A DNA stretch of 64,000 nucleotides from Tubulanus polymorphus (GCF_964204645.1 NC_134035.1:1612001-1676000); one strand, 5' to 3'; shown: positions 40,829 to 54,000, numbered from the stretch's first letter. Numbers and translations are program-made. Notes: a model not told the origin generated them from the letters alone.

Positions 40829-42860
40829 GCAGACCCCGTTCCAGCTGCTGCCTTCCCAGTTAGGCGCCCTAGGCAGCGGACCCTCTGGCAGCCGCACCCT
40901 GGGCGGCTGTGGGAGGGGGAGTTACGGGAGGTAAGCATCATCTCAACATCAATGAGATTTGATATTGTACTAACCAGGTGGCGATCGCGTCACCGAAACC
41001 ACCAGATGGCGATCCCACCATTTATGCCACCAGATGGAAATTTTACGCTTCATCAGCTAATAACGAAAATGTTGCAGCCGCCGTGATATTTCAAGGTAAG
41101 ACATATTCGATTTTAATCAATTAAATCTCAACATCGTCGAGAAGAAAATGTAGCCCCTGATGCCACAGAAAATAGTAAGTCTACACATATTCATGATCCT
41201 ATTTTAGATATGTCCGTTTGTAGCCAGACATTTTTGGTGGATGGGTTTATATATACTTATGTAAAAATGGCAAATCTCACTTGCCCGGGCGGAACCAAGA
41301 ATTCTAAATAAGAGCTGAAACGTTCGTATTTTCAGTTGTACATATTGAATACACGCATACCAAGCGGTCCAGTTCCAGTTAAGATTTGACTCAGTAGAGT
41401 TAAAACATCAAAACGAGTTAATTCTATAACTAAATGATCGAAAATATCCATTTCGATTGTGATCAAATTGATAAGTTTAACTAGATTCTCAAAGTCCACC
41501 AGATGGCGATCCCACCAGTTACGCCACCAGATGGCGATCCCACGCTTCATTAGCTGATAATGAAAATGTTGCAGCCGCCATGACATCTTAGGACGTATTC
41601 AATTTTAATCAATTAAATCTTAACATCATGATTGTTATTATATTATAGGAAGAAAATGCAGCTCTGTTGCAGTTGTCGCCGCACCTGCACCTGAGCCAGC
41701 CCGAAAAGGGCCCGCGTTGGTGCCGTGAAAGTAAGTTTGATTTGCGTCAAATCATTTTAAGTTCGATAATCTGGGCAGGGTTTTATAGACCACATCATTT
41801 TCTCCTAGGGGTAAATCCTCAACCTTGGCCCGATTTCATAGACCGGGTTTCAATGTTGCCCCCAGCGGTAAATCCTCAACATAGGTGACAACCACCATTG
41901 TAACAATGATAAACTATGGTAATAACTGACAAATTTTTAAATGTTTCCAGTTGTCCGAGCGTTCAAACCACTTTTCAAGTGATTTTCGCGTCTCTGCACC
42001 CACAGTTCATGGTTATTCATGAAGACTTGACCATTATTTCCTGTTTTAAGTCGTGTAGATTATTATCATTGTGGTTCACCAATGATTATGAGGATATTTT
42101 ATTGTTTTCAAAATTTGCATCGGAAAAAGAATTATCCCTGAATCTCTCTGGTCCTACCGAGCTATTCACATATAAGAATCCCTGAACCTTTCCGGTCCTA
42201 CCGAGCTATTCACATATAGAATCCCTGAACCTTTCCGGTCCTACCGAGCTATTCACATATAGAATCCCTGAACCTTTCCGGTCCTACCGAGCTATTCACA
42301 TATAGAATCCTTGAATCTCTCTGGTCCTACCAAGTTATTCTGATACCGAATTCTCTAAACAGTAAGAAATAATTTAATGTTTCGATGATTTAATCAATGT
42401 TGATCGTTTTGTTTTTTCCAGAGAGACGAAATGCCGTTACGGCGCTCCCCACGGCTTCGACGCCGTAGAGTAAGTTTGAATTGTTTACTGAGTTAGTGGT
42501 ATTCCAGACCTGATAACGACTTTGAGAGTAGTGCCTCCATTTTTAAGAGCTTTGAAATATCAAAATACTTTCAAGATCACAATGATTTCTAGTTGTGGTT
42601 ATTTTTCGATCTCTTTCATCTGAACCTTGGCTGTGGGAGGGGGAGTTACGGGAGGTAAGCATCATCTCAATTTGTTTATTTAACAATCATTGAAGAGATT
42701 AGGCGGAATATCGCCGTGGATCCGCGGTATTTAGTTAATTTTTTGACGCGATGTAAGTACAACTTTTTGCACTTATATTATACTCTCTACTTTCTCTTTT
42801 CACTGATCACATCATTTTTCATCCCCCGCTCGTGTTGAGATAAATATCCTCAACGTATAT
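40829..42860 (+). pseudogene. Inverted, order-scrambled partial paralogue of the micro-exon gene
   Basis: Exon homologues at 40829-40930 (ADPVP...WEGELRE, 30-nt deletion), 41141-41174 (EENVAPDATEN, acceptor lost), 41649-41730 (frameshifted chimera ending [11 protein letters not shown]), 42422-42469 ([16 protein letters not shown]) and ~42629-42654. Intron 41731-42130 is the reverse complement of ~52800-53231; ~42700-42860 matches ~50620-50790. Confidence 0.75.
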
Positions 42861-43874
42861 TGAATAAAGTACTGGCTGTAATGGTGTAAAACTATCTTGC
42901 TCTATCCGTTATCAATTACACTTTCCTGTTCGACCAATAATCAGAAGATTATGTATCAAAAGAAATCCTTTTCTCAAATACTGACAAAACTTGAGAGTGA
43001 GAAGCAAAAAACATTTTCATGCCGGTATCACGGTTCCCTCAGTTATATGAATTCAGAATTCCCAAGTATTTCATGGGTGATTTTTCAATTTTCCCAAATG
43101 GCAATGAACACATATCGTCATGCAACAGTCAACATTTTAGCGGTGACTGGTTAATAAAGGTGATTTTCAAGGGAAATTGCTGAAGAAAGTTGCCCTTGGC
43201 AAATACAACATGCGAAATATAATGAATTTCCCAAGTATTTTCCTGATATAAGGAAAATTTTTCAAATTCCCAAATATTTCCAAACCGGGAATTATTATTA
43301 CAAAATTCCCAAGTTTTTCCCAATTTCCCTGTTCTGTGGGAACCATACGGTATAATCCGCACATCGTAAACGGATGCATAGCAAAAATCGAAAAAATAAT
43401 TTGGTGTCTATAATTTGAGAATGTACCTTTATAAGAATAACTTAGTATACATGTGACTAAATATACACATAACTAGACATACACAAACCTAGACATACAC
43501 ATGCCTAGACATACACATGACTAGACATACACATGACTAGACATACACATGACTAGATACACACATGACTAGATACACACATGACTAAGTATTCAGGTGA
43601 CTAGTCAGAGACTGCATTCGTGTTTTAATAGTTGTTATCATTGTTTCCAGAGGGTTGGAGAAACCTCTGGGGAGTTACTGGACATATCCCGTGAATCGTA
43701 GCGGTCTAACCAGGAAGATGACCATATCCAGACCAACCAGAATACCCGCTTTTGAAAACCCTCTTACATCTTCCCATATTGCTGGCTGAATGCGTGCTCG
43801 CGGCGCGTGTTGGGCGTAAATTCTTGATATCTGCACCGGCAACGTGGACCTGAGTAAAAGCTCAGCAACAATTT

Positions 43875-51000: not shown

Positions 51001-54000
51001 CTACATTTGCGAGAGTTAACTCTGAACTCAGGATCCAGTTCCACACATGAGTTAGATTTAACTCTGAACTCAGGATCCAGTTCTACAGTTACGAGTTAAA
51101 GTTAACTCTGAACTCGGGATCCAGGACCCAGTTCCACAGTTGTGAGTTACAGTTAACTAAATTAATCATCAGTTATCAACAGTAAGGCGCTCAGTAACAT
51201 CTTTCATATTTCTGTTCAAATCAGAGACAAATTCAGTATTTCTTGTCATAAAATAGTAACAAATACCGAAAATCAGTAACAGTTTGGGCAGCTCTGCTAA
51301 AAATGTCTGGCTACAAACGGACATATCTAAATAGGATCATGAATATGTGCAGACTTACCATTTTCCGTCGCATCGACGGGGGCGGCGGGGGCGGCAGCTG
51401 CATTTTCTGCCTATAATATAATAACAATCATGATGTTAAGGTTTAAGAAAACAACAAAAAAATTTGTCAAAATTCATGCAGTTTTTACTAGCGTTTCGAT
51501 AACACGAATCGTAATTAGAGAGATAATGGGGCCAATTCCCTATATGAAAATCAAAAGCTGAAAGAGAGCCTGCAAACAAGAGCATTTCAAGAGCTCAACT
51601 AATGCAGCGCAAAGTTTCCAAACAAACCAAGAAATCACAATTTCAAAGTTTTTCTTGATTTCTCTTTATAGTACATTCGGCGTTTATGTATAGCAGTTCC
51701 GGTCCATTGGATAATCCTTTCATCATCGCTTTAATGAAATTTGAACAGTAGGGAACTGGCACGCCAGCTATCCCTTCAGATGGCACCGCTTAGGTATGTG
51801 AGACAATCTAATGGGACAGAAAGTGAACAAGAAGTGCGACAAGTCGTCGTCAAATTAGAGCATCGATATTTTTTCGCGCATCTCTTATTGTATTAATAGT
51901 GAGCACTGGATCATATCATTACGGTTAAAAATACCCGACTATTTGATATCTCTAATTTGAGTAGTTTTCACCTGAATATATGACAGCGCAAGGGCTCTAA
52001 TAACTTACTCTTCGGCGTCTCAGCCGCGGCGATCGCCTCAGCGGCGGTATCTCGTCTCTCTGGAAAAAACAAAACAATCAACATTGATTAAATCATCGAA
52101 ACATTAAATGATTTCTTACTGATTGGAGAATTCGGTATCAGAATAGCTCGGTAGGACCAGAGAGATTCAGGGATTCTATATGTGAATAGCTCGGTAGGAC
52201 CAGAGATTCAGGGATTCTACATGTGAATAGCTCAGTAGGACCAGAGAGATTCAGGGATTCTGTATGTCTTCCTGTTCATTGACGTGTCAGTAATGATCAA
52301 CACATTCAGTGTATTTGATGCATTATAATTATTTTCACTTATAGTTCAAACTTACATCAGCTTGCGGCGGCGGCGGCGGCGTCGCAGGTGTTTCAGTCTA
52401 AAAAGTAAAAAAACGATATTTCCATTGGTTATAAAAACATGAAAATGATTCATTTCAATTTAATATAATAAAACTTGGTTCCACAGTTCAGGACCCAGTC
52501 CCACAGTTACAGAACCTGGCTCCGCAGTTCTGGACCCAGTCCCACAGTTACAGAACCTGGCTCCGCAGTTCTGGACCCAGTTCCACAGTTTGAAGTTATG
52601 ATCTAGTAAAGAGATACCGATGCTGGATCCTAGTTTTCCAGCCAATGATATTCAGTTAGTTCCGTGCGATGGTCATCAAGCCGATTGTCATCAATTTCTA
52701 GATCTCTCCCTGTCCCGCCGCCCCAGAATTAGGTATTTTTACTTTTTTTTGGTTTCGATTTTTTGGTGCCACGAGATCCAAAGCAGAAGAATTCTACACT
52801 ATTTTAATTCTTTTTCCGATGCAGATTTTGAAAACAATAAAATATCCTCATAATCATTGGTGAACCACAATGATAATAATCTACATGACTTAAAACAGGA
52901 AATAATGGTCAAGTCTTCATGAATAACCATGAACTGTGGGTGCAGAGACGCGAAAATCACTTGAAAAGTGGTTTGAACGCTCGGACAACTGGAAACATTT
53001 AAAAATTTGTCAGTTTTTACCATAGTTTATCATTGTTACAATGGTGGTTGTCACCTATGTTGAGGATTTACCGCTAGGGGCAACATTGAAACCCGGTCTA
53101 TGAAATCGGGCCACGGTTGAGGATTTACCCCTAGGAGAAAATGATGTGGTCTATAAAACCCTGCCCAGATTATCAATAAACTTATTTGAAATTAGCTTCA
53201 CTTAAAATGATTTGACTCAAATCAAACTTACTTTAACCGGTCCGACGCGTGCCCGTTTAGGGCTAACGGGGTCCTATAAAATAAAAACAAGTTGAAATCA
53301 ACATCCAGAATTTTCAAACATATTTCTGAAGGAAATCTCAATTTCAGATTATCTTAATAATCTTTGGTGAGCCACGAAAATGATAATCTACACAACTAAA
53401 AAATGGAAATGAATAACCATGAACTGCGGGTGCAGAAACGACAACACCACTTGCAAAAAGGGCTTCAACAAACTCTCCACAATCACAAGAGGCACGTACT
53501 ACCATCGCGAAAATCTTGTGCCTTTTTTTCCATGCCCAAAATAGATGTTCAAGCCACTTGGAAAGTGGTTTTTTTCGCATCGACAAACTCTCGTCGCAAT
53601 CACAAATCATACTTGTCGTAAGCTTAAACTTTCACAAGATCCCGTCGGCAGGCGGACAGACGGAGAGACAGGCGGACAGACGGAGAGACAGGCGGACAGA
53701 CGGAGAGACAGGCACACAGACGAACCGACTGTAAAATGATTTGATGAAATTCAAACTCACCGATGCCGGTACCTCGAGCTTCCTCTTCTATAAAATAAAA
53801 AATCAACTTTAGTTTAACGACGTCAACAAAAATTCAGACATATTTCATCTGCAGTCGTTTGTGTTCAACTGTAAATTCAATAGAAATGTTCACAATATTT
53901 ACCGGCACATTCACGCACGTGTGGAATTCATTTCTCTACATAAAAAGAAAAACAAGAGCTCAATTTAGCATTTATGAAAATCAGAATAAATTATCTCAAA

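Follow-up and report, generated by a model that had tools for sequence, protein, structure and literature searches.

Divergent micro-exons between near-identical introns in an inverted, nine-locus gene arrangement of Tubulanus polymorphus

The window described here is a 64,000-nt stretch of Tubulanus polymorphus DNA (GCF_964204645.1, NC_134035.1:1612001-1676000). The genome examined comprises 268 Mb in 77 contigs, of which the window is positions 1,612,001-1,676,000 of contig 11. As read from the sequence, the minus strand carries a gene (gene B, or arm B) in which GC-rich micro-exons follow one another through AT-rich DNA. Arm A (40829-42878), on the plus strand, lies tail to tail with it; five of the B exons are copied there in changed order and some of the introns are kept. 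Two micro-exons common to both arms, SPK and RDE, differ mostly at silent sites between introns that are nearly identical, and this contrast, its extent in the genome and its possible causes are the subject of this report.

Each micro-exon of arm B has a GTAAGT donor and an AG acceptor preceded by a pyrimidine tract, and most lengths are multiples of three; those of 60, 45, 48, 27, 36, 54, 33, 27, 42, 42 and 51 nt are symmetric and all divisible by 3. The reading frame is unbroken through the exons from 53232-53273 to 47560-48027, including one of 236 nt. Micro-exon splicing is predicted from these signals and from the codon-structured substitution described below. The following features of arm B are used in the text.

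53232-53273, minus strand: micro-exon SPK, 42 nt, phase 0, with AG and GTAAGT boundaries; B-type allele, fixed at 7 sites against the A-type
52805-53174, minus strand: intron core, 370 nt; 5 differences from the arm A copy
52356-52397, minus strand: micro-exon TETP, 42 nt; no arm A counterpart, 9 copies, zero diversity
52060-52267, minus strand: 3' part of an intron, with 41-43-nt tandem repeats and 81 unique nt; homologous to arm A 42134-42421
52009-52059, minus strand: micro-exon RDE, 51 nt; "beta" allele, identical in 6 of 9 B arms
51359-51410, minus strand: exon AENAA...DATEN, 52 nt, phase 0 to 1
50736-50801, minus strand: exon of 66 nt
48362-48597, minus strand: exon of 236 nt; frame continuous with its neighbours, diversity 0.005
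47560-48027, minus strand: last exon, with TAG stop; acidic and proline-rich, no detectable relatives

The splice-proximal ~25-35 nt are alike across different introns of gene B. An extended donor motif, GTAAGTTT followed by G or C, AAT and a T-rich stretch, recurs across different B introns and sometimes runs on as ...AAATCATTTTA; present at most B micro-exons, it may be a micro-exon recognition signal. Upstream, three tandem modules lie at 57318-58007, with exons at 57963-58007, 57622-57669 and 57318-57344 and the same 25-nt upstream intron end. The module exons vary by substitutions and codon indels, so that a conserved flank again borders a variable exon, here with replacement changes. In protein searches, which used the exons of gene B singly, Pfam, Atlas, a 5.8-billion-protein set and an exhaustive search of 1.8 billion representatives returned only chance low-complexity matches. 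A search of sequencing runs found no RNA run that matched the gene, and the only possible one (X4) placed no reads on 49700-53499; it is one small run, and the absence proves nothing.

Arm A is made of the following pieces.

40829-40930, plus strand: piece of the 3' end of the 236-nt exon, with a private 30-nt in-frame deletion at the window locus
41142-41174, plus strand: remnant of an AENAA-like exon with DATEN
41236-41600, plus strand: arm-A-specific intron sequence, found in A arms only (7 copies) and nowhere else in the genome
41649-41730, plus strand: fused exon joining the 5' part of a second AENAA-like exon to the SPK part (41698-41730) by a ~120-nt deletion; frame broken
41731-42421, plus strand: intron between SPK and RDE, equal to B 53231-52805 joined to 52267-52060
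42422-42469, plus strand: micro-exon RDE, 48 nt, one of 8 alleles among 18 copies; five sites within 15 nt differ from the locus 2 copy
42470-42628, plus strand: A-type intron downstream of RDE, also present in the B arms of loci 5, 7 and 8; replaced in the B arm of the window
42629-42670, plus strand: exact second copy, 42 nt, of an exon end and donor (as at 40905-40946); a rearrangement junction
42687-42752, plus strand: copy of the VIEEIRR exon; the acceptor CAG is changed to CAA in all A arms that keep the segment, except at locus 6

The intron at 41731-42421 thus equals two B introns minus a 537-nt module that contains TETP. A/B-fixed differences persist in its first ~35 nt and in a 23-nt indel, and the two divergent exons, SPK and RDE, flank this B-like stretch on either side. 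Frame and splice sites are lost in eight of the nine A arms of the genome, the ~120-nt deletion having fused two exons and a larger deletion being present at loci 5 and 9. Locus 6 differs: its A arm has an unfused AENAA-like exon, an intron of ~95 nt and an SPK exon in coherent frame. Judged by its sequence, arm A resembles an old paralogue that once coded for protein and is now in decay. The 42-nt direct repeat (40905-40946 and 42629-42670) consists of an exon end and the first 16 intron bases; at loci 5 and 9 the A-arm deletion has its junction in the same donor-proximal sequence, so that breakpoints recur within ~16 nt of this donor. Inverted 16-nt tandem arrays at 43431-43606 and 46163-46376 flank the inter-arm spacer, so the inverted symmetry reaches beyond the exon-bearing parts.

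The arrangement is not confined to the window. A unit of ~17 kb, holding arm A, the spacer and the 3' two-thirds of gene B (approximately 40950-57863), occurs at 9 loci on contigs 8, 9 and 11. The intron core is present at all nine as inverted pairs 10.4-11.6 kb apart, each locus having an A arm and a B arm. Over the unit, loci 7 and 8 differ by 0.4%, loci 1 and 2 by 0.8%, most pairs by 1-3% and locus 6 by ~3%. In whole-genome searches by degenerate codon pattern, the RDE exon and the SPK exon each turned up exactly 18 times, so that true counterparts are compared; extra matches to a looser pattern, at C8:9982074 and C12:3228051, proved to be unrelated sequence. Some loci are paired ~78-81 kb apart, which suggests that they are part of a larger repeated block. 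Homology between loci stops near 57864; loci 6, 7 and 8 differ where the window has the 5' micro-exons 57963-58007 and 58542-58601, and the 5' parts of the B genes may come in alternative forms. In full length, the intron core is confined to the 18 arms plus older fragments at the same loci, and only a ~130-nt sub-part of it is a dispersed repeat. Within the core, 41804-41950 (and 52989-53135) belongs to this dispersed repeat of ~165-225 nt with an internal sub-repeat of ~57 nt. Hundreds of candidate genomic copies are 85-98% identical to each other and 79-86% identical to the window copy; since the repeat piece also sits in older intron copies of gene B, it is of little value for dating. The 41-43-nt tandem repeat of the intron (42134-42340 and 52121-52267) varies in copy number by locus and by arm.

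Between the two arms of the window, the SPK part (41698-41730 against 53232-53264) differs at 8 of 33 nt, which amount to six synonymous codons and one A/P codon. The intron that follows differs at 1 of 32 bases, then by a 23-nt indel, and then at 5 of 370 positions. The RDE exons (42422-42469, plus strand; 52009-52059, minus strand) differ by nine synonymous codons, one replacement (M/I) and one codon indel, or 10 of 48 aligned bases, against four differences in the 81 nt of intron upstream. By block, divergence between the arms is 24% in the SPK exon, 21% in the RDE exon and 18% in the DATEN part, compared with 1.4-4.9% in the neighbouring introns; the two exons together differ at 18 of 81 sites, the adjacent introns at 10 of 484 (Fisher p = 4.6e-10). 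An earlier note, made from the window sequence alone, had reported synonymous recoding of paralogous micro-exons within almost identical introns, and every codon pair that it listed was found; its description of the SPK, RDE and DATEN parts and of their flanks is borne out, the contrast being even stronger than it had said.

The excess of silent exon divergence over intron divergence extends to all 18 genomic copies. Nei-Gojobori counts on the SPK and RDE exons of all arms gave, for the 81 A-B pairs, an exon pS of 0.55-0.57 (dS ~1), a dN of 0.086 and a dN/dS of ~0.09, with an intron divergence of 0.024, a 22-fold contrast. Among A arms the exon dS was 0.41 and dN 0.079, with 0.013 for the intron; among B arms the values were 0.23, 0.029 and 0.019, and exon/intron ratios within the A-A and B-B pairs were 11-43. 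The RDE exon alone has eight alleles, connected by ~18 silent and five replacement steps, and shows all four bases at two fourfold sites; its flanks are almost invariant over 82 nt upstream and 135 nt downstream. In a separate exon tree, eight A arms are split from the B arms and the A arm of locus 6 (support 99/100, branch 0.2 per site). The same split is weaker in the intron tree, with support 67/94 and a branch of 0.007.

The contrast is absent from the other shared exons, 40829-40930 and 42687-42752, which differ by 4% and 7.6% against 14% and 5% in adjacent introns. Diversity is 0-1% in exons without an arm A partner (TETP, 55559-55612 and both large 3' exons). Excess diversity is found only in exons with a paralogous partner in the same unit, be it in the other arm or, for exon 57622, in a tandem module.

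The exon variants are old, since most recur in several copies and all four bases are present at two fourfold sites. Of 84 exon columns 36 vary, 4 of them as singletons; of 504 intron columns 44 vary, 29 of them as singletons. Singleton density per site is therefore 0.048 in exons and 0.058 in introns, and this equality means that recent mutation input is equal and that the exon excess lies wholly in shared, older variants. The RDE and SPK exons are identical within loci 2, 3 and 4 and between loci 7 and 8, except for one replacement in the locus 2 A-arm SPK. Elsewhere differences are abrupt: the A-arm RDE exons of loci 1 and 2, loci only 0.8% apart, have five differences within 15 nt, and the B arms of loci 5 and 9 differ in their exons at ten sites. 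Over 19.4 kb, loci 1 and 2 have four mismatch clusters, two in micro-exons, one in a 16-nt tandem repeat and one in a short non-exonic stretch, where the chance expectation is <0.005. The exons are not hypermutating at present. Hypermutation driven by CpG was considered and rejected, as many differences are transversions outside CpG and CpG-rich exons without partners are invariant. Short GC-rich hairpins in the RDE exon would place both four-state sites in loops. The proposal in the earlier note that the peptides are under purifying selection holds for the substitution signature (the dN/dS of the A-B pairs and the ratio of silent to replacement steps in RDE), but in arm A such selection is historical at best, with the frame lost at eight of nine loci.

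In the introns, states are shared in ways that follow locus as well as arm. An 11-nt deletion, linked to two single-nucleotide polymorphisms (SNPs), marks loci 7, 8 and 9 in both arms and locus 5 in its B arm, and loci 1-4 lack it in both; other SNPs cross arm type, and sites 41825 and 41923 show all four combinations with it. Perfect sorting by arm type is seen at seven sites of the SPK exon and at only three intron markers (41745, the 23-nt indel and 42115), between which informative polymorphisms track locus groups or cross arm type. Derived intron states common to both arms of a locus indicate conversion from arm to arm after the loci had separated. Exchange is read here from the shared polymorphisms themselves. 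The zone of A/B differences reaches ~35-50 nt from the exon into the intron; as it runs past the splice site, the boundary is a gradient at the DNA level. A mechanism linked to splicing, by copying of excised introns, was rejected on the same ground, since these first ~35-50 intron nt retain A/B-fixed differences, and a mobile intron was rejected from the copy distribution, the full-length core being restricted to the 18 arms.

The exons have also moved. The two arms of locus 6 have swapped SPK exons along with the first part of the SPK intron, a reciprocal exchange. Loci 5, 7 and 8 each have an A-like RDE exon in the B arm, followed there by the A-type downstream intron. All four combinations of left and right RDE halves are seen, a reassortment within 51 nt, and loci 5 and 9 have B-arm SPK exons whose 3' end is that of the A-arm allele of locus 6. 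Exon 57622-57669 of locus 2 has a 5' half equal to that of the tandem paralogue 57318-57344, whose upstream intron end is identical. Two possibilities that the earlier note had raised, homogenisation of introns by conversion and the swapping of old exon variants as cassettes, are supported by the distribution of variants among the nine loci.

Several further elements lie in or near gene B. A perfect (TA)68 tract at 49552-49687 and a long poly-C/G run at 50634-50678 are both within its introns. Rfam matches to plant and animal microRNA (miRNA) precursors at 50298-50471 (plus strand) and 56578-56671 (minus strand) score 51 and 43 bits, far under the gathering scores, and are probably hairpin-forming repeats, not miRNA genes; read depth is very high at 50335-50461. 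A macrosatellite at 25700-33600 consists of 29-nt and 72-nt tandem arrays with a period of ~2.2 kb, a higher GC of 0.47 and a strong AT skew.

With a probability of about 0.6, these data are explained by old paralogous exons that persist as islands while conversion or gap repair renews the introns, which serve as homology arms for exchange. Two old paralogous micro-exon genes, tail to tail, would have been the ancestors of arms A and B, and both arms would have been coding long enough for the silent sites of the shared exons to saturate. Repeated overwriting of the AT-rich introns (now 1-2% apart) would have followed, by non-allelic gene conversion or by gap repair, both from arm to inverted arm and across the nine units, with two exons of 33-51 nt staying as islands of old sequence. 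Inside the islands only silent sites would be free, since the peptide would hold the replacement sites and splicing signals probably constrain the introns next to the splice sites; with both held, the difference would look like pure synonymous recoding. Near-identical introns would act as homology arms for the occasional exchange of whole or half exons, which would yield mosaic exon alleles and abrupt clusters of differences between near-identical loci. The data show the divergence contrast, the deep exon and shallow intron genealogies, the arm-to-arm sharing of derived states in introns, the exon swaps and reassortment and the lack of current hypermutation; a great age for the A/B split is inferred. 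The exons might escape overwriting through selection on a few residue differences, through rejection of densely mismatched heteroduplex or by anchoring the ends of repair tracts.

Several points weigh against this account. The nine units are only 1-3% apart over 17 kb, as after recent amplification from one ancestor, and amplification from one unit should leave only two exon alleles; the A-arm RDE exons nevertheless include at least 3-4 deep half-exon types, with the two four-base fourfold sites. Long-standing concerted evolution of an older family could possibly explain these several types, and the degenerate-pattern search of the assembly found no other donor copy of the exon variants. Eight of nine A arms look non-functional, so nothing obvious shields their exons from overwriting, and the peptides of the two arms are nearly identical (A/P in SPK; M/I and a codon indel in RDE), with no clear selected difference. 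Exon status and expression of gene B are themselves predicted from sequence, and the protein searches gave no orthologue.

An unlikely alternative is that the GC/CpG-rich micro-exons, or mismatched heteroduplex formed over them, mutate faster, with purifying selection removing the replacements. The tight clustering of differences within exons would be expected under such mutagenesis, as would the RDE replacements not linked to the indel, namely three CpG transitions (CGG to CAG, CGA to CAA, CGC to TGC) and one ATA/ATG change, and the two sites with all four bases but no outside donor. Private mutations are, however, no commoner in exons than in introns, near-identical loci (2, 3 and 4; 7 and 8) have accumulated no RDE or SPK differences beyond one replacement, the beta allele is unchanged in six loci, and equally GC/CpG-rich exons without an arm A partner show 0-1% diversity; reassortment of half-exons points to exchange of pre-existing variants. 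About as unlikely is a one-off patchwork, in which one burst of rearrangement or gap repair built arm A by copying B introns between older exons, with no homogenisation afterwards. It would place the junctions in exons as the sole shared homology, and the divergent exons do bound the B-like intron 41731-42421, at whose junction a short GAAT match was read by eye; other block edges and deletions also lie within ~15-40 nt of exon boundaries, and a weak A/B split persists in the intron tree. Against it, derived intron states are common to both arms of only some loci, so exchange continued after the loci had separated, and exon variants too moved after amplification. The patchwork is better regarded as a special case of island persistence with intron renewal than as a true alternative to it.

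It is quite improbable that the silent divergence is actively maintained, the exons of the arms being kept unlike (for example with respect to hairpin small RNAs) or the A arms serving as a germline cassette store for which the conserved introns would be ready-made recombination arms; if true, this would be a new way of selecting intron identity and exon non-identity in one gene family. Its specific form, in which convergent read-through gives a hairpin RNA and unlike exons spare the mRNA from hairpin-derived small RNAs, is hypothetical, derived from the geometry, and very unlikely. The geometry does fit, with convergent arms and near-perfect complementary intron stems of 370-460 nt, and the excess is found only in exons present in both arms; identical runs of ~23-25 nt between the arms, read by eye in the shared exon segment 40829-40930, argue against it, and the diversity among A arms of different loci is left unexplained. 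The earlier note had also allowed for stronger constraint on the introns. A functional intron, with an embedded RNA gene, a long splicing enhancer or a regulatory element, would account for the similarity of splice-proximal ~25-35 nt across introns of the gene, which indicates some constraint at the ends. This too is very improbable, and the evidence goes against intron constraint: elsewhere in the gene, older copies of these intron pieces reach only 71-94% identity, a dispersed repeat makes up part of the core, no Rfam family was matched within the homogenised blocks, singleton density (the recent mutation load) equals that of the exons, and neighbouring exons, spacer and tandem repeats are equally similar between loci. 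An artefact, whether a chimeric assembly, repeats that were collapsed or mis-polished, or exons compared that do not correspond, is extremely improbable. The region is multi-copy and repeat-rich, and the independent DNA runs cover arm B only, but the same arm architecture and exon types recur at nine loci on three contigs, so that the plus-strand copy is not an assembly chimera, which the earlier note had named as a refuting case; codon structure is respected, the count of exactly 18 copies per exon makes pairing unambiguous, and contigs from three DNA runs (one study, possibly of the assembly sample) cross the B exon-intron junctions with 0-3 differences.

If island persistence with intron renewal is correct, the family is an unusually clean natural case in which gene conversion separates exon and intron histories at the scale of tens of bases. 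In the 18 copies the exon genealogy is ~30 times deeper than that of the adjacent intron. Dating of duplicates from introns or from whole-locus identity can then mislead badly, and silent-site divergence of exons can over- or understate age, depending on exchange. A testable question is raised, namely what spares a 50-nt exon from homogenisation when the encoded peptide is the same.

Among known systems, introner-like introns occur in many unrelated genes. They share with the present case near-identical introns beside dissimilar exon sequence, whereas the intron here is found only in the 18 arms and in older fragments at the same loci. Chicken immunoglobulin pseudo-V donors and the vls cassettes of Borrelia, which lie inverted beside vlsE, diversify protein somatically or during infection. 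As in those silent-cassette systems, a non-expressed partial neighbour donates short segments through flanking homology; unlike them, the exchanged differences are mostly silent and the exchange is germline. The micro-exon genes (MEGs) of schistosomes are described as showing accelerated protein-coding evolution (PMC4350168). Common to both are chains of very short symmetric phase-0 exons, orphan and probably disordered proteins and multi-copy families. MEG variation also arises through exon skipping. In contrast to MEGs, replacement change is low here (dN/dS ~0.09), and protein searches gave no sequence relationship.

Divergence islands under interlocus gene conversion have been reviewed by Innan (PMC3924837) and are exemplified by the GOT1 paralogues of Tigriopus (PMC3728101). 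There as here, duplicates are kept similar except for short persistent islands, and conversion makes new mosaics. Island theory ascribes such islands to selection on replacement differences, whereas the differences in the present exons are ~80-90% silent. The closest parallel is with the opsins. In the L/M opsin genes of gibbons, exon divergence lies above intron divergence, at silent sites too, which has been ascribed to intronic conversion and selection against homogenisation of exons (Hiwatashi et al. 2011, PMC3213168). Exons that outdiverge introns even at silent sites, with a deep exon and a shallow intron tree, are thus features shared with the primate L/M opsins, in which conversion tracts are mostly intronic. 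Opsin exons differ at known spectral-tuning residues, so that selection against their homogenisation is understood, whereas the peptides here are almost the same; here, moreover, the islands are micro-exons of 33-51 nt, the pair is inverted and not tandem and includes a scrambled, decaying member, and the unit has been amplified nine-fold. On this comparison the kind of pattern is one already known from the L/M opsin genes, and the process behind it appears to be mostly a known one.

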